Of a DNA stretch of 64,000 nucleotides, positions 5,522 through 47,895 are shown piece after piece (positions within the stretch are counted from its first letter, which is position 1; every line of letters starts with the position of its first letter). The DNA lies in contig NW_027361677.1 of NCBI RefSeq assembly GCF_039654945.1, forward strand, positions 20,026,001-20,090,000, read 5' to 3'. The position numbers were made by a program, and so were the translations under genes. A model generated the notes under the pieces. That model saw only the letters and a program-made list of their open reading frames with translations. It had not been told where the DNA came from and did no database searches. This stretch comes from Dendrobates tinctorius. Taxonomy: Eukaryota.

Positions 5522-6328
5522 CAAGTAATGCAATGAGTGTACACAGTGACTGCCCAGCAGAATAGTGAGTGCAGCTCTGGAGTATAATACAGGATGTAAC
5601 TCAGGATCAGTAATGTAATGTATGTACACAATGACTGCACCAGCAGAATAGTGAGTGCAGCTCTGGAGTATAATACAGGATGTAACTCAGGATCAGTAAT
5701 GTAATGTATGTACACAGTGACTGCACCAGCAGAACAGTGAGTGCAGCTCTGGAGTATAATACAGGATGTAACTCAGGATCAGTAATGTAATGTATGTACA
5801 CAGTGACTGCACCAGCAGGATAGTGAGTGCAGCTCTGGAGTATAATACAGTATGTAACTCAGGATCAGTAATGTAATGTATGTACACAGTGACTGCACCA
5901 GCAGAATAGTGAGTGCAGCTCTGGGGTATAATACAGGATGTAACACAGGATCAGTAATGTATGTACACAATGACTGCACCAGCAGAATAGTGAGTGCAGC
6001 TCTGGAGTATAATACAGGATGTAACTCAGGATCAGTAATGTAATATATGTACACAGTGACTGCACCAGCAGAATAGTGAGTGCAGCTCTAGAGTATAATA
6101 CAGGATGTAACTCAGGATCAGTAATGTATGTACACAGTGACTGCACCAGCAGAATAGTGAGTGCAGCTCTGGAGTATAATACAGGATGTAACTCAGGATC
6201 AGTAATGTATGTACACAGTGACTGCACCAGCAGAATAATGAGTGCAGCTCTGGGGTATAATACAGGCTGTAACTCAGGATCAGTAATGTAATGTATGTAC
6301 ACAGTGATTGTACCAGCTGAATAGTGAG
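5522..6328 (+). repeat. 86/81-bp satellite array 1 (~9 units)
   Basis: Unit gtaatgtaatgtatgtacacagtgactgcaccagcagaatagtgagtgcagctctggagtataatacaggatgtaactcaggatca; the 81-bp variant lacks one gtaat. Confidence 0.97.
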
Positions 6329-7814: not shown

Positions 7815-10015
7815 CTATGACTTGCTGGGATATTCCCTACAAAGTAATGTGAGGTCCATGGAGCTGCGCTGAAGCCAAAGCCGCTGATCTTTCTCCAGCA
7901 TAATCATGCTGGCGTTATGGCCATGGCTGCGGCACTGCTCCACCTCCTTGCACTTTATGTAATGAAGCTGGCAGCAGTACGTGCAGCGGTAATGGGGCAA
8001 CTGTCCCGGCTGCAGGCAGCAGTGGAGCTGGTATTGCCTCCGCTGCTCCTCCATCACCGCTTGGACCTTCTCGGATGCGGTCATCAGGGATACCCGGTGT
8101 CTCTTGTCTCTGCATACTTTCATCACGGAACACAGCGAGCCGTGGAACATGTTACACACCGCGCAGCAATGCTCCAAAGAGTTTTCTACAAATACACAGT
8201 CGTGCATGACGAAGTCCACGTGTGGTACTTGGGTGTGACAACGCTCATCCTCAGGGTGGTCAATGACCATCCGACAGGACCCATTCACATGCTGAGCAAA
8301 GGGCTCATGGCAGTAGTCACAAAACTGAGGTTGGTAGAAAACGACACCATTGGAAGCCCCCAAGACGCGATCTGCAGAAGCGGGGGCCGTTCTCTGTTCT
8401 AACACTAGTTTTTGCAGTCTTTCCATGCAGGCATCTTCTCCTCGCCAGCGCCTTCTTTCTTGGATCAGGTCAGCCCCACACACCAGATTAGATCCGGAGC
8501 AAGACACCAGGTCAGATAAGATGTGACACTCCATCTGAGCTGCCAGGAAGCCGAGAGCAGCTGTAGCCAGAGTCTGTGGTGCCGGTAGGACATGTATTTT
8601 CAGGGAGGTGCCGTCTTCTTCTGGCTCATAGTTTAATCTTCTGAGGGATCGGATTATGGCATCCGGGGGTAGAGCGGCCTCCAGGGTGTGCACGTAATAT
8701 CCAGAGTACGTCTGCAGGGTGGGAGAGAGAGGGGGGAAAAGGTGAGCAATTACAAGAAAGCACATAGAATAGAAATGGACAGGTACCAGGCCGGAGGCGG
8801 CAGCTCTCCACCATTACATCCCAGAGTGCAGCAGAGGGCGGCTCCTCGGAGGCGGCGCCTCTTCACCATTACACCCCCGAGTGCAGCAGATGGTGGCTCC
8901 TCGGAGGCGGCACCTCTCCACCATTACACTCCAGAGTGCAGCAGATGTCGGCTCCTCGGAGGCGGCACCTCTCCACCATTACACCCCAGAGTGCAGCAGA
9001 TGGCAGCTCCTTGGAGGCGGCGCCTCTCCACCATTACACCCCAGAGTGCAGCAGATGGAGGCTCCTCAGAGACGGCACCTCTCCACCATTACACCCCAGA
9101 GTGTAGCAGACGGCGGCTCCTCTGAGGCGGCACCTCTTCACCATTACACCCCAGAGTGTAGCAGACGGCGGCTCCTCTGAGGCGGCACCTCTTCACCATT
9201 ACACCCCAGCGTGTAGCAGACGGCGGCTCCTCAGAGGTGGCACCTCTCCACCATTACACCCCAGAGTGCAGCAGATAGTGGCTCCTCAGAGGTGGCACCT
9301 CTCCACCATGACACCCCAGAGTGCAGCAGATGGTGGCACCTCTCCACCATGACACCCCAGAGTGCAGCAGATAGTGGCTCCTCAGAGGTGGCACCTCTCC
9401 ACCATTACACCCCAGAGTGCAGCAGATAGTGGCTCCTCAGAGGTGGCACCTCTCCACCATGACACCCCAGACTGCAGCAGATAGTGGCTCCTCTGAGGCG
9501 GCACCTCTTCACCATTACACCCCAGAGTGCAGCAGATGGCGGCTCCTCAGAGGTGGCACCTCTTCACCATTACACCCCAGAGTGCAGCAGATGGCGGCTC
9601 AGAGGCGGCACCTCTCCATCATTACACCCCCGCATGCAGCAGATTGCGTCTCCTCAGAGGCGTCACCTCTCCACCATTACACCCCAGCGTGCAGCAGATG
9701 GCGGCTCCTCACCTTTATAGTATGAAACTCCCTCCGCCAAGGAGTACAGTAAAGATGGAGCACCGCCTGCTCCAGGGCCTGGAAGGCAGCAGCCAGCTGT
9801 TGTAGTGCGAGGAGCAGGTCAGCTCTGTCCTGTAGTCCGCAGCCGATCAAGGGGAAGGCGTCATTCTGGAGATGATTGTGCAGGTCCGGCTCCTCCAGAA
9901 TCCGCTGTCTCACCAAGTCCATGATCCGGTTATCTGTGCATGGAGTAAGCGATCCGGCAGAGGAGGCGCCGAGAAGCCAGCCGCTATAGTGAGCCAGGAG
10001 CGAGTCCGCACTCAT
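7815..10015 (-). CDS. SPATA2L: Spermatogenesis-associated 2-like protein (PUB-like N-terminus), 399 aa; coding exons 10015-9713 and 8711-7815
   Basis: MSADSLLAHY...LEQAVLHLYCTPWRREFHTIK|TYSGYYVHTLEAALPPDAIIRSLRRLNY matches the SPATA2/SPATA2L PUB region. Phase-0 GT-AG intron 9712-8712. Position between CDK10 and VPS9D1. Confidence 0.9.
8790..9710. repeat. 55-bp minisatellite filling the SPATA2L coding intron (~17 copies)
   Basis: Unit ccattacaccccagagtgcagcagatggcggctcctcagaggcggcacctctcca. Confidence 0.95.
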
Positions 10016-15751: not shown

Positions 15752-16554
15752 TGTTGTGAGTTCATTTTCCCATTCGTCACTGAGGTCTGGTGAACTCCCT
15801 ATTCTGGTAAAGGAAGGTAATGAGCCTGATTATCAGGCACCTGAGTCTAATGATGATGACTGGCTGAGTGGAGTCACGGACTGGATATAAGGCTGCCGAC
15901 GCCCTTCTGCCCTGCGGGTGATTTCTCTGTGGACTTCTAGGAAACCAGTCTGATTCCTGCTCCTCTAAAGCTAAGTTTTCTGCTTTGCCTTTTAGCATTT
16001 GTGTTTTGTTTTTGTTTGCCTTGCTTTTCTGGATTCTGCCATTCCCTGCTGGGGTGAGCTGATTCTTCTTTTGCCTGTTGCTCTGTCTTCAGAATATTCC
16101 TGAGTACTGACATAGTCTTTTTGAAGCCTAGCGTCTTCAGGGCCTTTTTCACTGTCAGTATGTTGGCTCTTATTTTCATAGGGTTTTTCTCGGATTGCAG
16201 ACAGCAGCCTTCCTGTCCTTTCCTATCTAGTTAGCTTGGGCCCCGTCTTTGCTCATTCTATCTTTCTGTCTGTGTTGTGTTCTTTCTTCTTGCTTCACCG
16301 TCATTATTTGTGGGGGGCTGCCTTTTGCTTTGGGGTCTGCTCTGGGGCAGTTTAGATTTCCCTTTCTGTCTTTAGGCTATGTAGTTCTCCGGCTGTGATC
16401 GAGGGGTCTAGGGCATCGTAGGAACCCCCCACGGCTACTGCTAGTTGTGTTGATAGGTTCAGGGGTCTGCAATCCGATAGCTGCCAACTTCTCTGGTTTT
16501 CTGGACTTAGCTAGCATTTCTGTTTTTGCCTCCTACGGTGACTCAATCATAACA
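15752..16554 (+). repeat. 5' LTR (TATA at 15886)
   Basis: tgttgtgag...cataaca; direct repeat of 20735-21537. Confidence 0.96.
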
Positions 16555-19600: not shown

Positions 19601-20873
19601 TAGTGGCTTGTTGATGCCTTTGCCGGTCCCCAGGAGGCCATGGACCCATATTTCAATGGATTTCATCTCTGATATGCCGGTCTCTCAAAAAATGACTGTT
19701 ATTTGGGTGATTTGTGATAGGTTCTCTAAGATGGTTCATCTTGTACCACTCCCTAAGTTGCCATCTTCTTCTGAGTTGGTTCCCTTGTTTTTACAACAGG
19801 TGGTTCGCTTGCACGGGATTCCTGAGAACATTGTATCTGACAGAGGAGTTCAGTTTGTGTCTAGATTTTGGAGGACTTTCTGTTCCAAGCTGGGAATTCA
19901 GTTGTCCTTCTCCTCTGCTTTTCACCCTCAGACCAATGGGCAGACAGAGAGAAGAAACCAGACCTTGGAGTCGTATTTGAGATGTTTTATTTCCGCTGAT
20001 CAGGATGATTGGGTTTCATTTTTGCCCTTGGCCGAATTTGCTTTAAATAATAGAACTAGTTCTGCCACTTTGATGTCACCTTTTTTTTGTAACTTTGGGT
20101 TTCATCCTCGATTTTCTTCAGGGCAGGTGGAGCCTTCTGCCTGCCCAGGTGTTGACACTGTGGTGGAGAGAATGCACCAAATCTGGGACCAAGTGGTGGA
20201 TAAGTTATCTCTCTCCCAGGAAAAGGCCCAGCGGTTTTCCAATCGACATAGGACCATTGGTCCCCAGTTTAAGATTGGTGATATGGTGTGGATATCATCA
20301 AAAAATATTGCTATGAAGGTGGCTTCTCCTAAGTTTAAGCCTAGATTTATTGGACCTTACAAGATTTTGGAGATTATTAATCCGGTCTCTTTTCGTTTGG
20401 CTCTCCCTGTCACATTTAAAATCCATAATGTGTTCCATAAGTCCTTGTTGAAGAGGTTTGTTGAACCAGTTGTTCCTGGGGTGGCACCTCCGGACCCTGT
20501 ATTGGTTGAAGGTAACATGGAATATGAGGTAGAGAAAATACTGGATTCCCGTCTGGCTAGACGGAGACTCCAGTATTTGGTTAAGTGGAAGGGTTATGGT
20601 CAGGAGGATAATTCCTGGGTCTCTGCCTCTGATATTCATGCCAAAAGATTGGTGCGTGCCTTTCATCGGGCTCACCCTGATCGCCCTGGTGGCGTGATTG
20701 AGGGTTCGGTGACCCCTCCTCAAGGGGGAGGTACTGTTGTGAGTTCATTTTCCCCTTCGTCACTGAAGTCTGGTGAACTCCCTATTCTGGTAAAGGAAGG
20801 TAATGAGCCTGATTATCAGGCACCTGAGTCTAATGATGATGACTGGCTGAGTGGAGTCACGGACTGGATATAA
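16690..20873 (+). pseudogene. gag-pol polyprotein (Gag, CCHC knuckle, aspartic protease, RT, RNase H, integrase, chromodomain), interrupted
   Basis: Motifs CFFCGDASHIISVC, FVDSGA, YLDD, VDASEIG, HCSALAGH...C..C, SDRG/QTE and YEVEKILDSR...YLVKWKGY. In-frame stops at 17115 and 19392; frameshifts near 17395, 18135 and ~18528. Confidence 0.92.
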
Positions 20874-21537: not shown

Positions 21538-24500
21538 GGAGGGTGACTGGGAGCATAGAGGGACTGTACAGTGCACAGAGGGTGACAGAGCGACTGTACA
21601 AAGCAGGGAGGGTGACGGGGAGCAGAGAGCGACTGTACAGAGGACAGAGGGTGACAGGGAGCAGAGAGCGACTGTACAGAGGACAGAGGGTGACAGGGAG
21701 CAGAGAGCGACTACAGAGCAGGGAGGGTGATGGGGAGCAGAGAGCGACTGTACAAAGCAAGGAGGGTGACAGGGAGCAGAGAGCAACTGTACAAGCCAGG
21801 GAGGGTGACAGAGCAGACAGCGACTGTACAGAGAACGGAGGGTGACTGGGAGCATAGAGGGACTGTACAGTGCACAGAGGGTGACAGAGCGACTGTACAA
21901 AGCAGGGAGGGTGACGGGGAGCAGAGAGCGACTGTACAGAGGACAGAGGGTGACAGGGAGCAGAGAGTGACTGTACAGAGGACAGAGGGTGACAGGGAGC
22001 AGAGAGCGACTACAGAGCAGGGAGGGTGACGGGGAGCAGAGAGCGACTGTACAAAGCAAGGAGGGTGACGGGGAGCAGAGAGCGACTGTACAAAGCAAGG
22101 AGGGTGACAGGGAGCAGAGAGCAACTGTACAAGCCAGGGAGGGTGACAGAGCAGACAGCGACTGTACAGAGAACGGAGGGTGACTGGGAGCATAGAGGGA
22201 CTGTACAGTGCACAGAGGGTGACAGAGCGACTGTACAAAGCAGGGAGGGTGACGGGGAGCAGAGAGCGACTGTACAGAGGACAGAGGGTGACAGGGAGCA
22301 GAGAGCGACTGTACAGAGGACAGGGTGACAGGGAGCAGAGAGCGACTACAGAGCAGGGAGGGTGACGGGGAGCAGAGAGCGACTGTACAAAGCAAGGAGG
22401 GTGATGGGGAGCAGAGAGCGACTGTACAAAGCAAGGAGGGTGACAGGGAGCAGAGGGCAACTGTACAAGCCAGGGAGGGTGACGGAGCAGACAGCGACTG
22501 TACAGAGAACAGAGGGTGACTGGGAGCATAGAGGGGCTGTACAGAGCAGGGAGGGTGACAGGAAGCAGAGAGCAACTGTACAGGGCAGGGAGGGTGACAG
22601 GGAGCAGAGAGCGACTGTACAGGGCAGGGAGGGTGACAGAGCGACGACAGAGTGACTGTACAGAGCAGGGAGGGTGACAGGGTGCAAAGAGCAACTGTAC
22701 AGAGCAGAGAGCGACTGTACAGGGCAGGGAGGGTGACAGGAAGCAGAGAGCCACTGTACAAGCCAGGGAGGGTGACGGAGCAGACAGCGACTGTACAGAG
22801 CACGGAGTTTGACAGTTAGCAGAGAGCAACTGTACAAGCCAGGGAGGGTGACTGATCAGGCAGCAACTGTACAGGGCAGGGAGGGCGACAGAGCGATGAC
22901 AGAGAGTGACTGTACAGAGCAGGGAGGGTGACAGGGTGCAGAGAGCGACTGTACAGGGCAGGGAGGGTGACAGAGTGACTGTACAGAGAACGGAGGGTGA
23001 CTGGGAGCAGAGAGCGACTGTACAGAGGACAGAGGGTGACAGGGAGCAGAGAGCGACTGTACAGAGCAGGGAGGGTGACGGGGAACAGAGGGTGACTGTA
23101 CAAAGCAGGGAGGGTGACGGGGAGCAGAGAGCAACTGTACAAGCCACGGAGGGTGATGGAGCAGACAGCGACTGTACAGAGAACGGAGGGTGACTGGGAG
23201 CATAGAGGAACTGTACAGAGCAGGGAGGGTGACAGGGAGCAGAGAGCGATTGTACAGGGCAGGGAGAGTGACAGGGAGCAGGGAGGGTGACAGAGCGACA
23301 ACAGAGAGTGACTGTACAGAGCACGGAGGGTGATGGAGCAGAGAGCGACTGTACAGGGCAGGGAGGGTAACAGGAAGCAGAGAACCACTGTACAGAGCAG
23401 TGAGGGTGACAGAGTGACTGTTCAGAGCACGGAGGGTGACAGGGAGCAGAGAGCGACTGTACAAAGCAAGGAGGGTGACAGTGAGCAAAGAGCAACTGTA
23501 CAAGCCGGGAGGGTGACGGAGCAGACAGCGACTGTACAGAGAAAGGAGGGTGACTGGGAGCATAGAGGGACTGTACAGAGCACAGAGGGTGACAGAGCGA
23601 CTGTACAGAGCAGAGAGCGACTGTACAGGGCAGGGAGGGTGACAGGAAGCAGAGAGACACTGTACAAGCCAGGGAGGGTGACGGAGCAGACAGCGACTAT
23701 ACAGAGCACGGAGTTTGACAGTTAGCAGAGAGCAACTGTACAAGCCAGGGAGGGTGACTGAGCAGGCAGCAACTGTACAGGGCAGGGAGGGCGACAGAGC
23801 GACGACAGAGAGTGACTGTACAGAGCAGGGAGGGTACAGGGTGCAGAGAGCGACTGTACAGGGCAGGGAGGGTGATAGAGTGACTGTACAGAGAACGGAG
23901 GGTGACTGGGAGCATAGAGGGACTGTACAGAGCACAGAGGGTGACAGAGCAACTGTACAAAGCAGGGAGGGTGACGGGGAGCAGAGAGCGACTGTACAGA
24001 GGACAGTGGGTGAGAGGGAGCAGAGCGACTGGACAGAGGGTGACAGGGAACAGAGAGCGACTGGACAGAGGACAGAGGGTAACGGAGCAGAGAGCGACTG
24101 TACAGAGCAGGGAGGGTGACGGAGAACAGAGGGTGACTGTACAAAGCAGGGAGGGTGACGGGGAGTAGAGAGCGACTGTACAAAGCAGGGAGGGTGACTG
24201 GGAGCATAGAGGGACTGTACAGTGCACAGAGGGTGACAGAGCGACTGTACAAAGCAGGGAGGGTGACGGGGAGCAGAGAGCGACTGTACAGAGGACAGAG
24301 GGTGACAGGGAGCAGAGAGCGACTGTACAGAGGACAGAGGGTGACAGGGAGCAGAGAGCGACTACAGAGCAGGGAGGGTGATGGGGAGCAGAGAGCGACT
24401 GTACAAAGCAAGGAGGGTGACAGTGAGAAGAGAGCAATTGTACAAGCCAGGGAGGGTGACGGAGCAGACAGCGACTGTACAGAGAACGGAGGGTGACTGG

Positions 24501-24715
24501 GAGCATAGAGGGACTGTACAGAGCACAGAGGGTGACAGAGCGACTATACAGAGAACAGAGGGTGACGGGGAGCAGAGAGCGACTGTACAGAGGACAGAGG
24601 GTGACAGGGAGCAGAGAGTGACTGTACAGAGGACAGAGGGTGACGGAGCAGGGAGCAACTGTACAGAGGACAGAGGATGACAGGGAGCAGAGAGCGACTG
24701 TACAGAGCAGGGAGG
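21538..24715. repeat. G/A-rich minisatellite, right block (more diverged ~37-bp units); continues at 25349-25540
   Basis: Same ctgtaca/ggagggtgac core as 10855-15751. Confidence 0.95.
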
Positions 24716-25540: not shown

Positions 25541-27592
25541 CATTACATTATTGATCATGTATACTCCAGAGCAGCACTCACTATTCTGCTGGTGCAGTCA
25601 CTGTGTACATGCATTACATTACTGATCCTGAGTTACACCCTGTATTATACTCCAGAACTGAATTCACTATTCTGCTGGTGCAGTCACTATGTACATACAT
25701 TACATTACTGATCCTGAGTTACATCCTGTATTATACTCCAGAGCTGCACTCACTATTCTGCTGTGCAGTCACTGTGTACATACATTACTGATCCTGAGTT
25801 ACATCCTGTATTATACCCCAGAGCTGCACTCACTATTCTGCTGGTGCAGTCACTGTGTACATACATTACATTACTGATCCTGAGTTACATCCTGTATTAT
25901 ACTCCAGAGCTGCACTCACTATTCTGCTGGTGCAGTCACTGTGTACATACATTACATTACTGATCCTGAGTTACATCCTGTATTATACTCCAGAGCTGCA
26001 CTCACTATTCTGCTGGTGCACTCACTGTGTACATAAATTACATTACTGATCCTGAGTTACATCCTGTATTCTACTCCAGAGCTACACTCACTATTCTGCT
26101 GGTGCAGTCACTGTGTACATACATTACTGATCCTGAGTTACATCCTGTATTATACTCCAGAACTGAATTCACTATTCTGCTGGTGCAGTCACAGTGTACA
26201 TACATTACATTACTGATCCTGAGTTACATCCTGTATTATACCCCAGAGCTGCACTCACTATTCTGCTGGTGCAGTCACTGTGTACATACATTACATTACT
26301 AATCCTGAGTTACATCCTTTATTATACTCCAGAGCTGCACTCACTATTCTGCTGGTGCAGTCACTATGTACATACATTACATTACTTATCCTGAGTTACA
26401 TCCTGTATTATACTCCAGAGCTGCACTCACTATTCTGCTGGTGCAGTCACTGTGTACATACATTACTGATCCTGAGTTACATCCTGTATTATACTCCAGA
26501 GCAGCACTCACTATTCTGCTGGTGCAGTCTCTGTGTACATACATTACATTACTGATCCTGAGTTACATCCTGTATTATACTCCAGAGCTGCACTCACTAT
26601 TCTGCTGGTGCACTCACTGTGTACATAAATTACATTACTGATCCTGAGTTACATCCTGTATTATACTCCAGAGCTGCACTCACTATTCTGCTGGTGCAGT
26701 CACTGTGTACATACATTACTGATCCTGAGTTACATCCTGTATTATACTCCAGAGCAGCACTCACTATTCTGCTGGTGCAGTCTCTGTGTACATACATTAC
26801 ATTACTGATCCTGAGTTACATCCTGTATTATACTCCAGAGCTGCACTCACTATTCTGCTGGTGCAGTCACTGTGTGCATACATTACTGATCCTGAGTTAC
26901 ATCCTGTATTATACTCCAGAGCTGCACTCACTATTCTGCTGGTGCACTCACTGTGTACATAAATTACATTACTGATCCTGAGTTACATCCTGTATTATAC
27001 TCCAGAGCTGCACTCGCTATTCTGCTTGTGCAGTCACTGTGTACATACATTACTGATCCTGAGTTACATCCTGTGTTATACTCCAGAGCTGCACTCACTA
27101 TTCTGCTGCTGCACTCACTGTGTACATACATTACATTACTGATCCTGAGTTACATCCTGTATTATACCCCAGAGCTGCACTCACTATTCTGCTGGTGCAG
27201 TCACTGTGTGCATACATTACTGATCCTGAGTTACATCCTGTATTATACTCCAGAGCTGCACTCACTATTCTGCTGGTGCAGTCACTGTGTGCATACATTA
27301 CTGATCCTGAGTTACATCCTGTATTATACTCCAGAGCTGCACTCACTATTCTGCTGGTGCACTCACTGTGTACATACATTACATTACTGATCCTGAGTTA
27401 CATCCTGTATTATACCCCAGAGCTGCACTCACTATTCTGCTGGTGCACTCACTGTGTACATACATTACATTACTGATCCTGAGTTACATCCTGTATTATG
27501 CACCAGAGCTGCACTCACTATCTGCTGGTGCAGTCACTGTGTACATATATTGCATTACTTTTGCTGTATTGTACTCCAGAGCTGCACTCACT
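25541..27592 (-). repeat. 86/81-bp satellite array 2 (inverted relative to arrays 1 and 3)
   Basis: Reverse complement of the array-1 unit, ~24 copies. Confidence 0.97.
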
Positions 27593-27706
27593 TCTGCCTG
27601 CCGTTGGGAAATCCTCCTGATTAACCTCTGTTTTCCGTTGTTACTTTTCATCCTGTATTTCATATGTAACATTACATAAAACTTTGTCCAGTGTTCCTTT
27701 CCCGTC

Positions 27707-27725
27707 TGACCACCAGGTGGCGCTC
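27707..27725 (+). promoter_or_regulatory. CTCF-like motif
   Basis: tgaccaccaggtggcgctc, a near-perfect match to the core consensus. Confidence 0.55.
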
Positions 27726-28140
27726 ACTGACAGCACAGTCTCCAGTCTTCCTTACAATAAGGCACTTTTTCTTTTTTCCCCTATAAACTTTTCCTGCTCT
27801 GGGAATTTTTAACCCTTCTTTCTCCAAACCGTTATCGTCGGCTGCTCACTTGTAGATGTCGGCCAATGGCTCTGGAGCTTATCGCGTTGTCTAGTCACTC
27901 CCCCGAAGAGCTTGCAATCTGTGTAGAATTATCCTGTAGCAGTGAAGTGTCCCCCTGATTGCCGGCTTCCAGGGTACATTGGTGTGCGGCAGGGTCAGGA
28001 GGAGGGTGCAGGGAGGGTGGGATTTGGTGGGAGTCTTTGGGGAGGTGCCACGCTCTCTATTATTATTGAGTCTGTATAGCCGACCTCCCTGATTGCCGTG
28101 AGACGCTGCGGTCCGGAGTTCTGCTGCTGAGCCGCTCACT

Positions 28141-30394
28141 ATGTCCACGTCACAGAGGCTGGTCCTGGTCCTTGGCGGAGCCGGTACTGTTGGGTCTGGG
28201 ATTGTGAAATGTCTTCTGGAGCGAGGTAGGGCCGAGCTCATCTTATGGGACAGGCGGCCGATCTCCGGTCCTAAGCGTTGTCCTCGTCTTATGCCGCAGG
28301 GTTCCAGGTTGCCGTAATTTCCCGAGATGACGCCCGCTTGGAGAAGCTGACGAGTTTTGTGCCGGCGCAGTACAGAGAAAGTCTTCACACCCTGGTTGGA
28401 GATGTGGGTAAGATGTGTCTAGGAGAAGCAAGGAGGCGTCCTACCTGTATGGCTATGAAGAATGTCAGGATTTCAGCTCTGGAGCACACACTGAATCGCA
28501 TTTGTTCCGTTTTTGTCCTTTATTTCCATGCACAGTCTGTGATATTACTTTCTGCTTGGGGGAGGGGGTCGCCTGCAGCACTGTCTGGCTCGCTGACCCC
28601 TTTTTTGTGTTTTGTGCAGGCTCGGAGCAGGGGGCGCAGGAGGCGGCAGCGGCTCTGGTCAGCAGAGCAGGAAAAGTGACCGATGTGGTTTCTTCGCTGG
28701 GGTTCAGCTGGTGGCAGGGTGGTCCGCCCCACACTCAGTCGCTGCAGGAGCTGCAGAGGGTACGCTGCCAGAACTGTTTCTTGTCATTAAATCGTTAGAA
28801 GCTTTTACCATCATCCCTGCTGCATGGGGCTTGTACGAAGAGCTGACAGTCTAAGTCCTGAAGGTCGGGCACTAAGCTTGTACTTGTGCAGTCCTATGTA
28901 ACTGACAGGTCGCATATTGCAATGTCAGAAGGACTGGTGCTACATGAGATGCTCATAGGTGCTGCACATTACTGACTCAGCTCTGTTGCATGTGTGCTGC
29001 ATGTTACTGATTCCGCTCTGGCTTGTGTGCTGCAAGGTACTGACTCGGCTCTGCTGCATGTGTACTGCACTCTAGTGACTTTGCTCTGTTGCATGTCTTC
29101 TGCACGTTACTGACTCGGGTGTGCTGCACGTGTTCAACCCACTTTTGAGCAGTTAATCTCTACTTCATCTTACAAACTCAGCACTGCTACTTCTGCAGTC
29201 AAACAGCCAGACGCTACTTGATAGAACTTAAGCAGCAGATATTTGTCCCACGCCTGTCACAACATTAAGAGGATAAAGATCATCAGACCGTGCAACAATG
29301 GGAGCGTAGAGGAAGGGGGGACCCCGGAGGTGTGATAATAGGATCTGAAACAAACAGACAAATATACAAGATATTCCATCAATTACAATCATAATGTAGC
29401 AGAGCCGGAACGGTTTTCTATCATGTACCGATATATCCCGTCACTGCACTTTGTGCCGAAATCATAGATACCTAACGTGTCCCTGAACTTCAGGAATGAA
29501 TGCAGATAATGGCGTCAGCTCACGGATCCATTCTGTCCCTGTAGGTGCTGGATACTTTACTTCTCAGCACGTTCACGTCCTGGAAGGCTTTCTTTCCCTT
29601 GATAAAAGATAATCCGAATGGAACATACACCTTTATTACCGGTAGGTGATGGTCAGAGGGTGAGGGGGTGTGTGTGTTACCGGCCACCTCTGCAATCTAT
29701 CAGTGGTGTCTGGTTTTATAGGCAAGGAGCATTAAACACCTGATGACCACCAGATTTCTTCAGCGCCCCTCCGATGCCTTTCGGGTTCGGCGAGCGCTCA
29801 GCAATGCTGCCAGTCTGAACTGTCAATCGTCAGGAGCACATTGGTCCCCGGCACAAGGCTAGGGAATGTTGCGCTCCTGAAGATCTCTGGATGTCTGCAA
29901 TGTCCAGTATTTTTTATGTGAAATTCATTCAGTTTTTCATGTGACCCTAGGGGGCGCTGGTGAGCGTTTGCTGATGCCGGGCACTGGATTCCTAACCTTG
30001 GGCGCAGCGGGAGCGCTGGCGTTTTCCCAGGTGATCCGGGAGGAGTATCCTGATGTTCCTTGTAAGCTGAATGAGGTTAGTGCTAAATTTGGGAGGGATA
30101 TAGGAAGAAATTGGAGTTTTGGCCTAACATGATGATTTATTTGGGGTCGGAGAATAATCACAATGAACGGTCGTAGATCATATGGTTCCAAAATTGGCTG
30201 TTTTTTGCCGTTATCAGGTAAAAATCAACATGGGGGTGGCTCCTCCCGAGCGCCTCGGACCCGGGTATGTGAGTCACTTGGAGGTAGGAGAAGCCGTTGC
30301 GTCGTTGGTGGAGAAAAGGAGGGTGTCCCACACGGTGCTCTGCGCCAACTCCACCACCGACCTCAAGACACTCATCTTAGAAGGGAAGCTGTGA
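28141..30394 (+). CDS. Uncharacterised atypical SDR / NAD(P)-binding Rossmann-fold protein, 243 aa; exons 28141-28225, 28300-28407, 28620-28759, 29545-29641, 29951-30075, 30218-30394
   Basis: Six exons with GT-AG introns join into a 732-nt ORF with no stop. N-terminal VLVLGGAGTVGSGIVKCLLERGFQVAVISR is a dinucleotide-binding motif, followed by GDV and VVSSLG SDR-like strands. No YxxxK. Confidence 0.9.
28958..29130. repeat. Degenerate ~35-bp tandem repeat in intron 3 of the SDR-like gene
   Basis: About 5 copies of gtgctgcatgttactgactcggctctgctgcatgt-like units. Confidence 0.6.
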
Positions 30395-31561
30395 GATTTG
30401 GGCGGACCAAACCTGGTTCATATCCCATGTGCCCCGCCACAAACCCATCTACCACCACTGATCCATCTCTGGAGCGGGGGTCTTCTAATAGCTCCTTATG
30501 GGTCAGAGATCCATCTATTAAGGGATACCACCATTTTTTTCCAATCCTTTATGGGCAAGGAACCAGCTGCAACCTGAACAATCCCTTGAAGAAAGTACTA
30601 ATCCAGATCTGTTCTAAGCCACCGCCGCTTTAGGATGACGTGTAAAATCCAGCTTGTTATTTTTTTTAACATTTTTTTTTTTTCTCTGGGAGTTTAATAA
30701 TGACAAGATGAATTTCATACATTCATCCCCTGCCCATCTGGCGTAATCTTTGACGGCTCCTACCAGCTTTATAGATATATAATATTAACCCCCTTGTTCC
30801 TGGCTTTTTCACCAATCCAATCTCCGATTCATGTGAATTTAATAAATCTTGATGAAATGATATTTTTGCATGTTCGTGTCTGTGATCCGGAGCGATTAAT
30901 CTGCTCATCTGCGGGTCTTACTGTCCATGTTGGCTGCAGTGAGCCAAGGATCCTTAGCTGTGTGACGGCTGAGAGGAAGGAGATGGGGGAATATCTGTAA
31001 ATCGCAGAAAAATGAGGTCACAGATAAAAAAGCTTATCCATAAGCTGAGCTGGTACAGCTGGCCGGCAAGCCATTTTTTTTTATGTGCCAGTCTCCATGT
31101 GCATGCCACCTCTCCTATGTGCACACATGGCATCTTACCCATTGCAAACTTCTCAGATCTTTCGCGCTTTCTTCCCAAATCCCTTTCCCTGGTTTTATTT
31201 CTTTAGGTAGGTTGCAAAATGATCTGCATGCCCCCACATGCATAAATCTGCAGGACTCCAGTTTCCCAACTATTCTTAGGGAACTGAAATATGGGCAGAC
31301 AATGTAAACTTCTTGCCGATGTCGGCCTGTAGAACAAGTGTTGTCAGCCATCTGTATAACGCACACATCTACTCTGATTTTATAAGCTTTTGTGACTTGA
31401 GGATCATCCGGTACCTTACGGGGCCACAACTACAGCCATATTTGTCCCATATAGATGGAGCAGTAGTGGGCACGGTAGACACCCCATGTTCCAGCGATTG
31501 GAAAGTTGGCACCTATTGTATGGATAGGTATTACCTTGTAATTTTAGTACATCTCCTTTAA

Positions 31562-31829
31562 AGTGTAACGGTCATTGCATGAGAGTGTTTTCATAATGTT
31601 GCTTATCGATGGGGGGTCCGGGGTCCAGGAACCCACCGATCTCTCAAAGCTATAGCTCCTGCATGAGCTTCACGAGCCTAATAGTAAAGATTAACCCAAG
31701 TTTGTAAGAGACTGTAGAGAGAAATGCTCATGCAGGAGCTGCTGATTTCAAAGAAGTGTTTTGACTAGTTGTTGGGTTCTCCAGATCTGGACCCCCATTG
31801 ATCAGCAATGCTTTACTTACAGTTACATT
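31562..31829. mobile_element. TTAA-flanked MITE (T2/Kolobok-like)
   Basis: ttaa-agtgtaac ... gttacatt-ttaa ends with internal inverted blocks (agctcctgcatgagc / gctcatgcaggagct; gggggtcc / ggaccccc). Confidence 0.65.
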
Positions 31830-31879
31830 TTAAGCCTTCTTTCTCGCTTACAGAGGATGTGTACAGTTTTGTTTTTTAA

Positions 31880-32246
31880 AGGGAATCGGTCAGCAGGCTT
31901 TGGTCATGTAATCTGAGAGCAGCACAATGTAGAGGAATCACTGATTCCAGTGTTTTTTTTACTAGATTGTTTCGCAGTTTCAATACAATTAGTGTTATCA
32001 GCAGGAGATTATCACTGCAGGACTAGTAGTCTGGTGTCTCCTGGTCCACCCACACCACTGATTGGCTGCTTTCTGTGTACACTAACAATCAGTGGTGTGG
32101 GTGGGGTTATACACAGCTCAGCATTTGAGCCCTGCTAGATCTGCAGCAGCGTAAACTGGATTGTATGACAACTGCTGCACACAGTAACTAAGTGATACCT
32201 ATCTGGAATCAGGGTCTCTGCCCCTATATCAGATTACATAGCAAAC
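31880..32246. mobile_element. TTAA/AGG-type MITE (T2/Kolobok-like), right end eroded
   Basis: Starts ttaa-agggaa and has inverted blocks atgtaatctg / cagattacat and ctgattccag / ctggaatcag. Confidence 0.6.
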
Positions 32247-33904
32247 AGAATTGGCGTAGGGTTTAAAGAGAATCTAAACACTTTCTGTTTTAGCCTGCAG
32301 CACAATCAGAATTTCGCGCAGATTACAATTGAATTTATAAGAAATGACCCCTCATATTCCTCCTCGTTCGGGGTGCAGTAGGCTCTGGCTATCGCTCAGT
32401 TACAGATCTGGATGACTCCCATTCACACACTGCTTATTTTTGCACCACAGACTTGTTCTCACCCCCCCCCCCCCTCCAAAAAAAAAAAAAAAAAAAATTT
32501 GGATACGGACTTGAAAGTTTTACCTTTTTGCAAGGCAACACGTGCAACAGAAGGGTGTGTGCCGCAACCGTGCACTGTAGGGAACATCGCGACAAAGTCG
32601 TGTTTACAGTTTCGAGTCTTCTATATTTCTATTATGGAATTTGTCAAAATAAAATAATGAAGACGCCGACAGCCGCCTCCCATGGGGAAAACTATAAATA
32701 AATCCGCTATAAGACAGCAATTATGTTCCATGTCGAATACTTGGCCCCGGCCTGAGAATCTCCTGCCAGGACAGAAAGATCCCAATTATTTCTTATTGTC
32801 TTTTGTTTTCGAAATGCTCGATAAAACCCAACTCTTTCAGGCAGGAAAAAAAAATGAAAGCTTTATTAAAAATAATTTTATTTCAATCAGAAGAGTAAAA
32901 GCAGAAATTCATCTTTCCCTATGGACATAGAGCCGCAATCTCCAGTCCAGCGGCAACACTACAACTCCCAGCTGCTGCCGTCAGGTCGTCTTTTGCCACA
33001 GGTAGTAGATCGCTGCTCTGGAGCATCGGTTTGCCAAAATTGGACGCTATAGACTTTGGCCGTCACGGTGGGAGTTGTAGTACTGACATAAGTCAGAGCT
33101 CTAGCATTTTGGGAGTTGGTTTAATTGCAGACCAACTTCCAGTGCTCCAGCTTTCGCAGGACTACAAGTCCCAGAAAAACAGCACTGGTAGTTTTGAAAG
33201 CTGTCTACAATGATAAATAGTTTAGTGCAAAGATCATCGGCTTAACAGATTGTGCCACAACTCGTGCCCTGCCGGCTTCACCTCTACAATCTGTAAGTCC
33301 ATACAGGTGGGCTACCACCTCAGCAAGGGATTCGATAGGTCATTTTAGGATTCAGGGACCCTTATCAATCCAAAATAAAGATGGGGGCTTTTTCCCCCTA
33401 CCATGCAGAGAATAGCAGTGGGTGGCCCGTAATGCAGAACTGTAAAGGGGGTCACAGCACTGAAACCCATTAGTTTCAGAATTAAAGGAAGGATCCCGAC
33501 TTATGTCATCACTTTGAGATGGGACCCTGTTATGTAGAAACTCTCTTCCTGGAAAAGCTGGGTGACCCATGTACGGAGCGTTCCCCATAAACAGCTCACT
33601 TTTTGTAGGTTTCTGTGAAGCCAGGATGATCTCCTGTAACATGGTGGGGGGGGGGCTCACTCAGGACTCTAGAAAAGTTGGGTGACGAGCCATACAGGGG
33701 TTGTAACAGTGGCCATATTGGGTTTAACATATACAGTAGAAAACGCTTCCCCTGCACGGTGTAGAAGATTAACATTATTTTTCGGGTTCACATTCATGGG
33801 CGAATGGCCAGTGGTTGAGGATTTCTTCATGTACGCAGGTAAGGTGCAGAATAATGTGCGGATGCAGCTGCTCACAAGTAGTTTCTCCAAGTCGCCGCTC
33901 CTCC

Positions 33905-36900
33905 TCAGTCAAGCTGGATCAGTGGAGGCACAGGGAGGGTCTCCAAATAGGCCAGGGCGCTCTGCAGCGAGGTCAAACAGTAGCCCACCTCTCCAATCAG
34001 ATCCCTAGGGAGAAGAAGAAAACAATATTATGAATATCGATTGGAATCCATCATCAAAACCCCTGAAGCCTGGATAAAACAGCCACAGGCATCACTTTAC
34101 GCTGACCCCCGATTGACAATCAATGGGGACCGGAAGTGCAATTCCAGAGACAACCTACGGTCAGGGGTGGTGCTGTTTGAGAGAAAGCTCCCGTGTTTCA
34201 AAATAATGGCTGCATGTAAATAATGTGCATAGATTAGGAAGAGGCTGTAAGTGTGGAAATGAGCTGCAAGGAAGACGAGAGGAGAGGAGACACCCAGACT
34301 GGCTGAGAGAAGAGTGACCGGGAGGAATAGACAGAGACGCAAGTCTGCAGAACTGGCTCAGGGAGACGATAAAGCTGTCACAGCAGCAGACATGTCACCA
34401 GGCCGACTAAGAGTCAGCGACAAGGCCAGGGACGGGGCGCCCCCCTGCTGTTATTGAGCGCTAGTGGCGCTCACTAAGAATTACACAAACTGTCACTGCT
34501 GAGACATGCAGAGCGTAATGGTGGGTACTTACCCCTCATGTATAAACTCCTCCAGCGCCGCGCACTCAGACACCAAATGCGACATGCCGCTCTTCAGCAC
34601 TACAAATGCCACAATGGGCAGGAGGTCGTCTGCGCCACTAGAAAGAGAAGAGAAAAAAATGGAGACGTTACTACATATGGGACAGTACAGGACATAGCGC
34701 CCCCTATAGTGAGCGAGAGCCAACGTCTGTACCTATAGATTGCATGGCAGCACTGGAGCCGATCGCTGGGGGTCTGCCTAGGGTCATCACCCCACAGCCG
34801 TCCCCCACTGTCTGGGGTCACGTCCAAAGCTGCTCTGACTGGGAAATTGGCAAGTCTGTGCTCATTAAGTCCTGACAGCTGCCCCCGAAATATGCCCCCC
34901 GTTGCACCGTCTTCCCCCTGCTTAACCCCTTCCCCACAGAGGGGACATCATCTCCCATATTCACGTTTTGCTTTCGATTCTTCGCCATGTTGAAGATCTT
35001 TGCTCCCCAATGACCCTTCTCATCGCAGATTCCCGGTCCGGTATTCCATTGTGACTCCTTTAGTAAATCATCTCCATGTTCTCTTCCCTCTACTATGTTG
35101 CCGTCTGGTCCCTTCCATGACTTTTTCCCATCATGACACTGCCGGCCCCCCACCCAACCTTCTCATCTTCTGTGGCACTCTGCTAATTTGAGCAGACAGG
35201 CGCTCTGCTTGGAAGCTGCTGCTCTGCAGAGCGCCACAGCCCCCTGTGCTCTGCAGGACAGGCCATGTTCTGCCTGCGACTGTCACATCTCATCCATCAG
35301 TGAAGACCCTAGAGGGGCCTCCTATCTGTACCCAATAAACATCATGTACTCAGCAACCTGTGCACACGAGGAGCAGAGGAGAGAGAGACACGTGCAGTGT
35401 ACAGATGGACGGAGACATGGAAAATGTCAGACGGCGCTCACCCTCAACCCAAAATATAAAGGCACTCACATGGCGGCACTCCCGGGAGAGTGGCAATATT
35501 CTTCTGTGCACTCACAAATGACACGCAGAGTCCTCACTGAAAACATAAGAAAGAACAAATTATGTAACAATTAGAGGGGTCTTACAGGTGCATTCAGTGT
35601 CTCAGTGGGCATTATATGTTACTGTGCAGAGCTGCACTCAAGTCAATCCCTTTAAGGTTGAGTATATTACTCCTTTACGTAAGATGGTGGAATTATGTTG
35701 CACCATTGCCATCAAGCAGCCATAGAAAGAGCTGATCAAACAGATTCCCAGGACCCTTGTAGGCGTGGGTTACACTTTTGCAGCTGCACCAGTTTTTCAA
35801 ACTTCCTTGAACTTATAAGTAATTATGGCATCCGGACCCGGGTTCTGCAAACTTCCTAGACCCTGGCGGTAACTCCGTGGCATCCGGACCCGGGTTCTGC
35901 AAACTTTCTAGACCCTGGCGGTAACTCCGTGGCATCCGGACCCGGGTTCTGCAAACTTTCTAGACCCTGGCGGTAACTCCGTGGCATCCGGACCCGGGTT
36001 CTGCAAACTTCCTAGACCCTGGCGGTAACTCCGTGGCATCCGGTCCCGGGTTCTGCAAACTTCCTAGACCCTGGCGGTAACTCTGTGGCATGCGGACCAG
36101 AGTTCTGCAAACTTCCTAGACCCTGGCGTTACTCCGTGGCATCTGGAGAAGGGTCCTGCAAGCGACATGTGACGCAAGGCCTAGTCACCAAGAAGCGTTG
36201 TACCACCATGTCATGATGTGGGTTTTGAAAAACACCAAAAGGTGCCGAGGATGCAGGCATATGACGTTTGCAAAACACTGGACCGGATGCCATGGATTTA
36301 CCGCTAGGGTCCTGCAAAGAATACCCACCACTATATGTCAGATTATGGAATGAGCTGACATCTCCTGCCTACGGGGTTCCTCCTTTATGGTTCATAGCAA
36401 GACCCCCTCCATGGTATCTATATACACTACAAGGGCACATGGACTGGTATTCTCCTTACGAGATGACCCCTTTAAACAACAATATCTGGGGTGTGAGCCT
36501 CTTTACGCCTCGTGTTATACTCCGGTCACTGGTCGCCTTGTGAAAGGGGTAATAACGGTTCTTACCAATGCCCTCCAGTTTTCTTTGCGGACTGCGTTGG
36601 TGCGGCAGGTTTTGCAGATCTTCCACAGCAGGTTTATACGGTTCCTTTATATCGTCTGGGTACAGCTTTTTCGGAACCCCCAGCACATATGGCATTGCTG
36701 TGCTGTACATATCCATAACCTGGAGAAGAGATTCCTCCTGGGCAAACATCACCTGTCTGAGGGGCAAGAAGATATATTTAAATCGGTCATGGCGTTCCCA
36801 CCTTGGGCCGTCCATCTACGGTAAGGACAAGAACGGCCGGTGGTCTCTAGTGAGATGACCCTTATGCATCTATATTAAATAGAGCGACCGATATAATTAC

Positions 36901-39900
36901 CTGTATAGAGCGAGAAGCGGCGGCCATAGTGGGGGAAAGAAGCTGTCCTCCAAGCAGTCCAGGCAGACGTCCTTCACTTGTGGGCTCAAAGGGAAATCCA
37001 GCGAGAACATGGCGCAAGAAAGCAATCGGTCTGGAGAATGGGGAGGGGGGGGTAAAATCACAAATTAATGCAGTAAACATTTTGATATAAAACTAATCCT
37101 ATCACTTCCCTTACTGACACATCATCATATAACTGCTCATCATTAGACCACTAGGTATGATCTGAACGTGCCCCCCCCATACGGACACATTTTGGGGGAC
37201 TACTTTTATATTTTATCACTTTCAGCCTATAGGGACGGGCCCAAGGGGCTACGACATCCTGTGCTGCCCCCTTGTGTATAAATATGGTATAACCCAAATT
37301 GTAAAGACTGTTTGGAGAAGTTTCTTTTGCCTTGGTCATAATCCCCCTCCCCCCCCAAAAAAAAACCAAAAAAAAAAACAAAAAGCGTATGGTCATCATA
37401 GAAAGCCGAAATAATACTGTCATATGGGTGGGCATAACTTCTGTTGCCATAAGGGCACGTATAGCGATTTCTGTTTCCAGGGTCACATCAGATTAACCCT
37501 TCGTCACTCACCTCTGGCATTGTGGATCTCCGTAACCACGACGTTTAGGTGCTGGGACGGGGTCAGTCTTTGCAGCGCGGCTGGCACGGTCAGCGACGTA
37601 GGGGACAGCAGATTTTCCAAGTCCTCAAAAGAGGTCTCTAGGTCTTTCCGGCACGGTCCTGTACTAAGCTCAATGCTGTTTTCCCAGCTTTCCAGCCCAT
37701 CTCCTATGGAGCGGCTGTGCTGAATGGAGGGCCGGCGAGGATCAGGGAGAAACTGGAAGCTTTTTGAGGATTTTAGCTGCGGCAGGCAGACAGACGATCC
37801 AGCCCCGTTATCGGCCTGGAGGGAACGACGGAAGAGTTTGGTGGCCGAGGTTGCCTTAGAGGGGTCCTTACTGATGACGGGATACAGGCGGCTGTAGATC
37901 TGGCACTGGAGATGGATCACTAGTTTGGCGAGAGGATGATCCGATGAGCTGGGATCAATGGGAACAAAACGCAATTAGACAGGGTACAATAGGGAGGAGG
38001 GGGTGTCACTTATTGGCTTTCCAGTAGACTACAACTTTGCAAGTCGCAGACAAGTTGTCCGAGAAGTCGCCTTGCAGCCCCAGCCTAGGAGTTCGGACCC
38101 TTCCCAATCCCCCCCGTCTCCAATACTGTGTGTATTACCTGAGGATTTGGCAGAGATAGCTGGAAACCGCCTCTACGTCACCCGGATTGTTCTTAATCTT
38201 CTCCTTATAGCCGGCCGGCCATCTCTAATGAACAACAACATTTAGGATCATAAAGAGGAAACGTATCGAGCTTCGTATAGCAACTCGCTCTCATCACATC
38301 CCATTGCCCGGAGCCACCGGTGTGGACGCGGCTCATTCTACAGAGCTCAAGTATGTTCTTCTAACACCAAGGAGGAAATGTTGTGGAATGATGGAAGCCT
38401 CAGGATGGGTAGACGCATTACTGATCGTGAAAGAAGGGGAAAAAAAAAACGGTAACAAATGTTCAAAACATCTAGATTTATTCAGTATGGCGTGTGAACC
38501 ACGTGCAGAAATCCAGGCACTTACAGCTTCCATCACTGGGGTTATTAACGGTTGTCTGAGGAATCATCAAGATCCGCTGCTGGCAGCTCCTGTGTAATCA
38601 CCGACCAATGACGTCCCCGATGTGCTCAATGGGAGATAAGTCAGGAGCCACTGCAGCCGTGGGAGCACATTCAGGGCACACAGGAACATTAGCAACATGC
38701 GGCCTGTTATGTTGTAAAATGGCTGCCCCACTGAGATGTTAGGGACCTGGAATTAAGACTAGAGGGGTCCAAATACTGTACATTATACACACACACACAC
38801 ACACAATAATCCCAGGGGTAGGACCACTGTGACATTCCCTCTTAAACAAAAATAATTTCTCCTCAACAATTGCAAAAAAAAAAAAAATATATATATTTTT
38901 AATGAAGTAAAATATGTAAACTAATTAAGAGGTTTGATATTTTCCACTAATAAAACACTCTGGGGAGCAGCTGCTGAAATTTGCCATGAAAACCTAGTGT
39001 ATATTACAACTGCACTCCATCTACTTCCATGGGAGCGGCGGTGTAACGTGTGACCCCCCCCCTTCCGTCCACTTCCATGGGAGTGGCGGTGTAACGTGTG
39101 ACCCCCCCCTTCCGTCCACTTCCATGGGAGCGGCGGTGTAACGTGTGGTCCACTTCCATGGGAGCGGCGGTGTAACGTGTGACCCCCTTCCGTCCACTTC
39201 CATGGGAGCGGCGGTGTAACGTGTGGTCCACTTCCATGGGAGCGGCGGTGTAACGTGTGACCCACTTCCATGGGAGCGGCGGTGTAACGTGTGACCCCAA
39301 TCCGTCCACTTCCATGGGAGCGGCGGTGTAACGTGTGGTCCACTTCCATGGGAGCGGCGGTGTAACGTGTGACCCCCTTCCGTCCACTTCCATGGAAGCG
39401 GCGGTGTAACGTGTGGTCCACTTCCATGGGAGCGGTGGTGTAACGTGTGACCCCGCTCCGTCCACTTCCATGGGAACGGCGGCGTAATGTGTGACCCCCG
39501 CTCCGTCCACTTCCATGGGATCGGCAGTGTAATGTGTGACACACCCCCCCCGGCTCCGTCCACTTCCATGGGAACGGCGGTGTAATGTGTGACCCCCCCC
39601 ACTCCGTCCACTTCCATGGGAACGGCGGTGTAATGTGTGACCCCCCCCACTCCGTCCACTTCCATGGGAACGGCGGTGTAATGTGTGACCCCCCCACTCC
39701 GTCCACTTCCATGGGAACGGCGGTGTAATGTGTGACCCCCCCCCTTCCATGGGAACGGCGGTGTAATGTGTGACCCCCCCCCTTCCATGGGAACGGCGGT
39801 GTAATGTGTGACCCCCGCTCCGTCCACTTCCATGGTAACGGCGGTGTAATGTGTGACCCCCGCTCCGTCCACTTCCATGGGAACGGCGGTGTAATGTGTG

Positions 39901-47842: not shown

Positions 47843-47895
47843 GTAAGGAACGGGGGCCGGAGAGCGAGCCAGAGCTGCTGCAGAACCTCTTACCA

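Follow-up and report, generated by a model that had tools for sequence, protein, structure and literature searches.

What is a "dead" dehydrogenase pocket conserved for? The question is raised by a gene at positions 28141-30394 (plus strand) in a 64,000-nt stretch of Dendrobates tinctorius DNA, here called the window, in whose positions all coordinates are given. Its product, as predicted, has the fold of a short-chain dehydrogenase/reductase (SDR) with zero residues of the SDR catalytic tetrad, and the gene is found under very strong constraint throughout the jawed vertebrates, e.g. in zebrafish, Xenopus, marsupials and platypus. Small, soluble-looking and open to both zebrafish and Xenopus genetics, it offers a tractable case in which the question can be put.

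By joining six exons, all of them with AG/GT flanks, we obtained 732 nt, i.e. 243 codons and a TGA, in an unbroken frame that the mechanical list of open reading frames (ORFs) holds only as fragments. The exon model proposed in an initial annotation of this DNA was thereby reconstructed exactly, and the motifs it had quoted are all in place, namely GGAGTVG at residues 12-18, ISR at 35-37, SSLGFSWWQGG at 89-99, FITGG at 141-145 and PGTGFLTLGAAG at 153-164. Splicing was checked by aligning assembled contigs of four public runs (X1, X19, X20 and X5; two organisms) to 27300-32300. The features of the locus are the following.

28065..30828, plus strand: mRNA span from assembled transcript contigs (X1 record 3, X19 record 9, X20 records 10 and 13)
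28141..28225, plus strand: coding exon 1, residues 1-28 and one base; ATG and glycine loop G12-G-A-G-T-V-G18 (28174-28194)
28300..28407, plus strand: coding exon 2, residues 29-65; strand beta2 ending in S36-R37 (28320-28325), the NADP-type position
28620..28759, plus strand: coding exon 3, residues 65-111; SSLG (28691-28702) at the NNAG place, and loop S94-W-W-Q-G-G-P-P-H-T-Q104 (28706-28738)
29545..29641, plus strand: coding exon 4, residues 112-144; T115 (29554-29556) at the Asn position, and strand beta5 ending in T143-G144
29951..30075, plus strand: coding exon 5, residues 144-185; loop GAGERLLMPGTG and start of helix alphaF, F157-L-T-L-G-A162 (29989-30006)
30218..30394, plus strand: coding exon 6, residues 186-243 and TGA; N189-M-G-V-A-P194 at the PGxIxT place; C-terminus ...EGKL

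The loop from S94 to Q104 is nearly invariant across the family, and the codon of G144, which occupies the Ser position, is split by the intron between exons 4 and 5. All five introns are absent at exact GT..AG borders in the contigs of X1, X20 and X5, and the last four in those of X19, which has no contig over the first joint. One contig of 1242 nt (X1 record 3) covers 28065-30828 with five joints and at most one mismatch. The runs are not recorded as RNA, but since the introns are missing precisely at GT..AG borders the contigs are regarded as transcripts; junction support, one of the checks that the initial annotation had proposed, was thus obtained. The ORF of 243 amino acids (aa) is not due to chance, because its product shares 85-91% of its residues with 243-aa proteins annotated in nine other frogs. 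Consequently, the locus is a genuine frog gene that is both spliced and expressed. The 3' ends of the contigs cluster at 30802-30828. The 5' untranslated region begins at 28065 at the latest, with one X20 contig extending unspliced to 27592; contigs cannot define a start site. No upstream ATG occurs in 28065-28140. An 86-bp satellite is found nearby, as one short array of it ends about 500 bp upstream of the mRNA start, and at 27300-27633 all four runs cover the repeat to a very high depth.

Shorter isoform records of about 201-207 aa exist in several species (P0013, P0137, P0161 and P0175; "isoform X2" records of turtle, axolotl and fish). The turtle record, P0013, is without exon 2, and with it strand beta2 and S36-R37. 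If real, such isoforms could not hold a dinucleotide in the usual manner. The joint that skipping of exon 2 would create was not seen in the contigs of the four frog runs.

The frog gene is orthologous to si:dkey-238o13.4 of zebrafish, which is itself uncharacterised. Searching with the 58-aa peptide of exon 6 against 1.84 billion representatives returned 14 proteins, all of them fragments or mis-modelled forms of one vertebrate protein, and the same peptide gave no usable match in the ESM Atlas. Word-index searches with the salmon, turtle and wombat orthologues gave 206-227 matches each, and those with names are called "uncharacterized protein si:dkey-238o13.4" or "LOC...". Orthologues were found in sharks, rays and chimaera; in Polypterus, gar, bowfin and teleosts; in coelacanth, lungfish, frogs and salamanders; and, among amniotes, in turtles, alligator, lizards, tuatara, platypus and four marsupials. 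Their length is nearly always 243 aa. Aligned end to end, the window protein is 90.9% identical to that of Pseudophryne, 90.5% to that of Lithobates, 85% to that of Xenopus laevis, 79% to that of platypus and 73-75% to those of chimaera and shark; by group, and without indels, identity is 85-91% to frogs, 75-83% to reptiles and mammals and 69-75% to fishes and sharks. These values point to a neobatrachian frog as the source of the window. Most species have one copy. Two distinct full-length copies are found in each of the elopomorphs Albula (P0033 and P0107) and Gymnothorax (P0042 and P0129), and the second ones may be paralogues of the teleost duplication that were kept in that lineage.

Neither eutherian nor bird orthologues were present among the matches to the salmon, turtle or wombat query, all of which come from predicted proteomes. 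This absence is worth noting because annotated copies would be expected near the top of the wombat list, which begins with marsupials, continues with turtles and platypus (79%) and then reaches lizards and frogs. As judged from these matches, the gene is pan-gnathostome and still present in monotremes and marsupials, and eutherians and birds have apparently lost it. It had earlier been taken as lineage-restricted, a view that the distribution overturns, and as probably lost in mammals, which agrees with the lack of eutherian matches but not with the orthologues of platypus and the four marsupials. Two signature motifs of the family, LGFSWWQG and PGTGFLT[LV]G, are both present in the window protein, and no prokaryotic relative with the two was found in 185,579 species genomes, where tblastn confirmed none of 39 pattern matches.

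Gene structure and substitution rates were compared next to these distributions. At the genomic loci of five orthologues (three frogs, platypus and Takifugu) the exon lengths are identical to those in the window, i.e. 85/108/140/97/125/177 nt, with AG/GT at all borders. The ratio of nonsynonymous to synonymous substitution rates (dN/dS; pairwise Nei-Gojobori) is 0.044-0.070 among four frogs, with dS of 0.58-1.15, and about 0.075 between window and platypus; the frog comparison, which had also been suggested at the outset, is thus not neutral. In an alignment of 44 species, the window protein agrees with all invariant and near-invariant columns except for a conservative V131I. The gene is therefore functional and under strong purifying selection. 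That it could instead be a decaying pseudogene, or a chance ORF put together from fragments, is a reading to which the missing catalytic residues, and nothing beyond them, would lend some appeal. It is contradicted by the intact ORF with five introns spliced in the four runs, by dN/dS values of 0.04-0.07, by exon lengths that are the same from pufferfish to platypus and by the column agreement just described. We consider it refuted and give it practically no credence.

Structure and profile work was done on orthologue P0156 (90.5% identical to the window protein) as a proxy, with P0159 (90.9%) as another. Pfam adh_short (PF00106) matches P0156 with 53 bits against a gathering cut-off of 26.6, and all 44 aligned members match it too. 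The match covers residues 7-149 (profile 2-141 of 195) and ends before the region of the catalytic Tyr. When the six exon peptides were searched separately, being too short as pieces, only exon 1 gave a sub-threshold Epimerase match. An AF2 model of P0156, built from the family alignment, has the strand and helix order of an SDR in a single domain, with a predicted local distance difference test (pLDDT) score of 82.8 and a predicted template-modelling score (pTM) of 0.85; confidence is low in the beta4-alphaE loop (91-105) and the beta5-alphaF loop (145-160). Over residues 1-233, Foldseek template-modelling (TM) scores of 0.73-0.79 and VIA Z of 23-24 link the model to classical SDRs in their hundreds (13-24% identity). 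Beta6 is joined to alphaG by a short stretch, from which it follows that the substrate lid is absent. The protein is accordingly modelled as a lid-less SDR fold of the classical type, 243 aa long, in keeping with the fold first assigned to it.

Within this fold the family stands apart. In the ESM Atlas it forms a cluster of its own with 323 members in Chordata, and its closest neighbours there are clusters of bacterial SDRs (244-247 aa, TM 0.83-0.85), together with a second, chordate-rich cluster of 246-aa SDRs. A profile of the C-terminal half (128-243) found nothing significant among all PDB sequences, and its matches to TATA-binding protein (E about 1) were rejected as noise. On sequence, the catalytic half is thus an orphan. 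The glycine loop, L11-G-G-A-G-T-V-G18-S-G, does not have the classical TGxxxGxG motif but the GxxGxxG (GGxGxxG) spacing of extended and complex SDRs, which explains the weak N-terminal matches to Epimerase, NmrA and KR. Two family identities were tried and rejected: PECR, as the alignment to 1yxm is confined to residues 6-138 (E 1.3e-9) and does not extend to the catalytic half, which is unrelated, and the NmrA-like/HSCARG group, as NmrA reaches 19.1 bits against a cut-off of 27 over residues 6-43 only, in a protein of 243 aa and one domain. The automatic names PECR, HSD17B14, L-fucose dehydrogenase-like and RhlG reflect similarity at the superfamily level only and are misleading; neither PECR nor HSD17B14 is a name to be used for this protein.

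The best profile matches of the family, 3l77 (E 1.2e-10, residues 7-217) and 1vl8, were used to locate the catalytic positions. At the NNAG place the protein reads S89-S-L-G92, with Gly alone retained. The Asn of helix alphaE corresponds to T115 and the Ser at the end of beta5 to G144, while Tyr falls on F157 in the 3l77 register or L158 in that of 1vl8, and Lys on G161 or A162. Predicted secondary structure is concordant, with beta5 at 138-144 and alphaF from 156. T143, G144, F157, L158, G161 and A162 are identical in 108 out of 108 full-length members, T115 is found in 95 of these, and no Tyr occurs in residues 145-172 of any of them. The only Lys within that segment is at position 149, in a loop, and is Lys in 78 of the 108 and mostly Arg in the others. 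The lack of a catalytic Tyr and Lys reported by the initial annotation was therefore borne out; its exact substitutions, Tyr to Leu and Lys to Ala, are ambiguous by one residue, with the same conclusion in either register. It was also right about SSLG and FITGG at the NNAG and Ser places, to which the replacement of the tetrad Asn and Ser (T115, G144) can be added. It erred in letting YxxxK come after PGxxx, as in classical SDRs the PG motif follows YxxxK, after strand beta6, and the PGTG of the window protein sits in the beta5-alphaF loop. The place of the PG motif, after predicted beta6 (182-188), is taken by N189-M190, followed by an invariant V192 that corresponds to the I/V of PGxIxT, in a register derived from predicted secondary structure. 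A HMMER register that puts the PG of 3l77 at N184 was set aside for its conflict with predicted strand 182-188, although the preferred register is itself uncertain. Other invariant residues, namely Y176 at the C-terminal end of alphaF, K182 as the first residue of beta6 and K125 in the C-terminal part of alphaE, would point away from the cofactor side, going by SDR/Rossmann topology. As the alignments have it, all four tetrad residues are replaced in the jawed-vertebrate orthologues, and canonical SDR catalysis is predicted to be excluded.

The cofactor site presents another picture. G12, G13, A14, G15, V17, G18 and G20 of the glycine loop are invariant, and S36, R37 and V192 are identical in 108/108 full-length members. 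At the end of beta2, S36-R37 aligns with the Ala-Arg of NADP-bound 3l77. According to the SDR coenzyme rules, such residues after strand 2 fit NADP(H), i.e. nicotinamide adenine dinucleotide phosphate, over NAD(H), its counterpart without the phosphate. Glycine loop and S36-R37 together suggest binding of a dinucleotide, and S36-R37 fits the NADP(H) preference that had been read from ISR. These same residues bear on whether the protein might do without any cofactor, as a structural or adaptor protein that uses the Rossmann fold as a scaffold and binds protein or nucleic acid through its conserved surface. The nicotinamide-side determinants (Tyr, Lys and PG) are all lost, as such a role would allow, and alphaE and alphaF, the usual oligomer interface of SDRs, are rich in invariants (W124, K125, F127, F128, F168, R173, E175 and Y176). 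But an invariant glycine loop and an S36-R37 pair without exception are difficult to account for unless the phosphate of a dinucleotide is bound. We consider a cofactor-free scaffold unlikely, because the dinucleotide loop and Arg37 are invariant.

Conservation is highest where catalysis would be expected. The segment values peak at beta4/SSLG (0.96), the start of alphaF (0.95), the beta5-alphaF loop (0.94) and the SWWQGGPPHTQ loop between beta4 and alphaE (0.92), and these best-conserved segments are the ones expected to surround nicotinamide and substrate. The protein could hence be a genuine, tetrad-independent oxidoreductase, in which NADPH in the retained Rossmann site passes hydride to an activated substrate (e.g. 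enoyl, quinone, flavin or tetrapyrrole-like) that can do without acid catalysis by Tyr/Lys. As an alternative, it might use a new polar set (H102, Q104, T143, K/R149, T155 and T159) in an open pocket that has no lid and is lined with W95-W96. The former active-site loops being the most conserved in the chain and invariant for more than 400 million years (My), a dN/dS of about 0.05, the basic residue kept at position 149 across 108 members and the presence of SDR enzymes with atypical centres (1w6u, DECR, and 3lf1) among the structural neighbours all speak for such an enzyme, as does expression in liver with regulation by oestradiol in brown trout, where a differential-expression table lists the gene as down 4.5-fold (PMC4556936). 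Against it, the four tetrad residues and the PG motif are all missing together, with Gly/Ala instead of Lys the nicotinamide ribose is no longer gripped in the usual way, the substrate-binding lid is absent, a sequence search with the C-terminal half reaches no enzyme of solved structure (best E about 1) and the AF2 model has low confidence in the two pocket loops (pLDDT 46-62, residues 145-160). An oxidoreductase of this kind is a serious possibility, though one that we would sooner doubt than assert.

Slightly favoured, and falling just short of being probable, is a non-catalytic binder that depends on NADP(H) or another ligand and acts as a sensor or an inactive partner subunit. The slight preference comes from the tetrad, NNAG and PG all having been replaced together by chemically incapable residues. 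The gene, with one copy and six exons, has kept its place between SPATA2L and VPS9D1 from a time that predates the divergence of cartilaginous and bony vertebrates. Its product retains the adenosine-phosphate half of the dinucleotide site, with the G12xxG15xxG18 loop and S36-R37, and V192 in the segment that contacts nicotinamide. The replacements in the tetrad would be unable to do acid-base chemistry or to hold the nicotinamide ribose. The protein would still bind NADP(H), presumably without the canonical SDR transfer of hydride and proton. The working surface would then be the remodelled pocket formed by W95-W96, H102, Q104, T143, K/R149, T155 and T159, because it is the most conserved part of the chain. 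The binder might sense redox state or a metabolite in the manner of HSCARG/NmrA, or be an inactive subunit that an SDR hetero-oligomer requires, as are BbsC and petunia benzaldehyde synthase beta.

Several points weigh against a non-catalytic binder. Both its cofactor binding and its lack of activity are deduced from sequence and a predicted model, and the structure and profile results come from P0156 rather than from the window protein itself. Strict conservation of the pocket and constant length are just as typical of a genuine enzyme. SDR-fold reductases without Tyr and Lys do exist, with DECR (1w6u) and 3lf1, described as having an "atypical catalytic centre", among the structural neighbours, and BLVRB is another SDR-fold reductase that lacks the Tyr-Lys pair. 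Loss of the Lys and of PG could weaken or abolish nicotinamide binding, and the distance of Y176, K182 and K125 from the pocket is an argument from SDR topology and not a measurement on the model. A further view is that the family represents a new functional class of SDR fold, maintained for more than 400 My in jawed vertebrates with an exchanged, rigid pocket and lost independently in eutherians and birds. Its pocket, with W95-W96, H102, Q104, T143, K/R149, T155, T159 and two glycine-rich loops, would serve either tetrad-independent chemistry or metabolite sensing. We hold this view to be rather doubtful, if well within reach.

Known systems resemble the frog protein in part. The alcohol dehydrogenase of Thermococcus sibiricus (3l77/3tn7) has the same fold and size (VIA Z 23.0-23.1, Foldseek TM 0.74, 21-22% identity), an NADP-type Arg behind strand 2 and a short link from beta6 to alphaG. 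Unlike the frog protein, it has the catalytic Ser, Tyr and Lys as well as the NAG and PG motifs, where the frog protein has G144, F157/L158, G161/A162, SSLG and NM, and GxxGxxG instead of TGxxxGxG. Classical-fold SDRs minus catalytic residues that are required as partner subunits include petunia benzaldehyde synthase beta (PhBS beta) and the BbsC of BbsCD (PMC13418739). A comparable case of an inactive subunit is the scaffold role of HSD17B8 in human KAR (4cqm), which is also among the structural neighbours. Such inactive subunits have lost one or a few residues (in PhBS beta only Lys, to Leu) and have an identified active partner, whereas in the frog protein the whole tetrad is gone. HSCARG/NMRAL1 and NmrA, atypical SDRs that serve as NAD(P)(H) sensors and bind dinucleotides without dehydrogenase activity, share the Rossmann fold and the GxxGxxG loop, and the Pfam models NmrA and Epimerase match within the first 40-55 residues of the family protein. 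NmrA-like proteins are, however, of about 300 aa and of the extended type with a C-terminal domain, while the frog protein has the classical architecture with one domain. HSDL1 ("inactive hydroxysteroid dehydrogenase-like 1") is an SDR conserved among vertebrates, with Phe in place of the catalytic Tyr. It retains Ser and Lys, belongs to family SDR12C and is related to the frog protein only at the superfamily level. PECR and HSD17B14 (L-fucose dehydrogenase) weakly resemble the family profile over its first 130-150 residues (1yxm, E 1.3e-9; 1yde, E 4.6e-7), but unlike the 243-aa frog protein they are catalytic SDRs with YxxxK and longer (270-303 aa).

The C-terminus was analyzed in the 126 near-full-length members (240-245 aa) of the family alignment. 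It has the form x-[N/K]-[L/I/M], with, among others, GNL in 27 members, GKL in 16, RNL in 13, KNL in 8 and GKI in 7, and lies at 30386-30391 in the window. This loosely resembles weak type 1 peroxisomal targeting signals (PTS1), of which the -ANL of catalase is an example, and may be a coincidence.

In the literature, si:dkey-238o13.4 was found only in differential-expression tables, i.e. the trout liver table cited above and one with lower expression in the brain of adult zebrafish following mild traumatic injury (PMC5752677). The literature yielded no functional study, and no paper matched six LOC identifiers. The gene is thus annotated but uncharacterised; calling it an uncharacterised gene, as had been done, is right as to function, but many genomes already carry it as si:dkey-238o13.4 or LOC.... 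Surveys of SDRs are usually anchored in human, e.g. one with 75 human genes (PMC9859523), and the gene escapes such surveys because it is missing from eutherians. It may for this reason reveal what eutherians and birds lost.

The position of the gene between SPATA2L and VPS9D1 was found to be as first proposed, with these neighbors in the window:

7815..8765, minus strand: upstream neighbour, SPATA2-like ORF (weak PUB-like match PF21388, E 8.5e-4)
33935..35540, minus strand: downstream neighbour, exons matching the Takifugu VPS9-domain gene (tblastn 60% over 53 aa, E 1e-14)

In Takifugu a SPATA2-like gene (minus), the orthologue (plus) and a VPS9-domain gene (minus) follow each other within 20 kb. 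The order SPATA2L(-)/SDR-like gene(+)/VPS9D1(-) in the window is the same as in pufferfish, and in platypus, where the upstream side was compared, a SPATA2-like gene (minus) likewise precedes the orthologue; the synteny comparison suggested at the outset thus gave concordant results. A 395-aa minus-strand ORF at 38921-40108 was considered as an exon of VPS9D1 and rejected, being a non-coding product of a 34-47-bp tandem repeat (39016-40008), the unit of which was also put at 45 bp. Another tandem repeat, of 55 bp (8792-9711), adjoins the SPATA2-like ORF.

The 86-bp satellite fills the last 16 kb of the window with an array of about 190 copies (95% matches) at 47895-64000, and shorter arrays are found at 5524-6328 and 25560-27559, the one that ends upstream of the SDR-like mRNA being in the opposite orientation. 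A purine-rich minisatellite of 34-39 bp (unit AGAGAGACTGTACAGGGCAGGGAGGGTGAC and variants) occupies 10872-15753 (4.9 kb) and 21587-24715 (3.1 kb) and is the reason for very long minus-strand ORFs and a strong GC and AT skew. Its two blocks flank a retroelement of the Ty3/gypsy type (17332-20870, plus strand), as if this had been inserted into one array. The element has separate ORFs for an aspartyl protease-like protein, reverse transcriptase-RNase H and an integrase, and the last carries zinc-binding, SH3 and chromo domains, resembling a chromovirus. Lastly, a 268-aa ORF at 4375-5178 (plus strand) with a sub-threshold match to the helix-turn-helix of Tc3-type transposases is probably a Tc1/mariner remnant.

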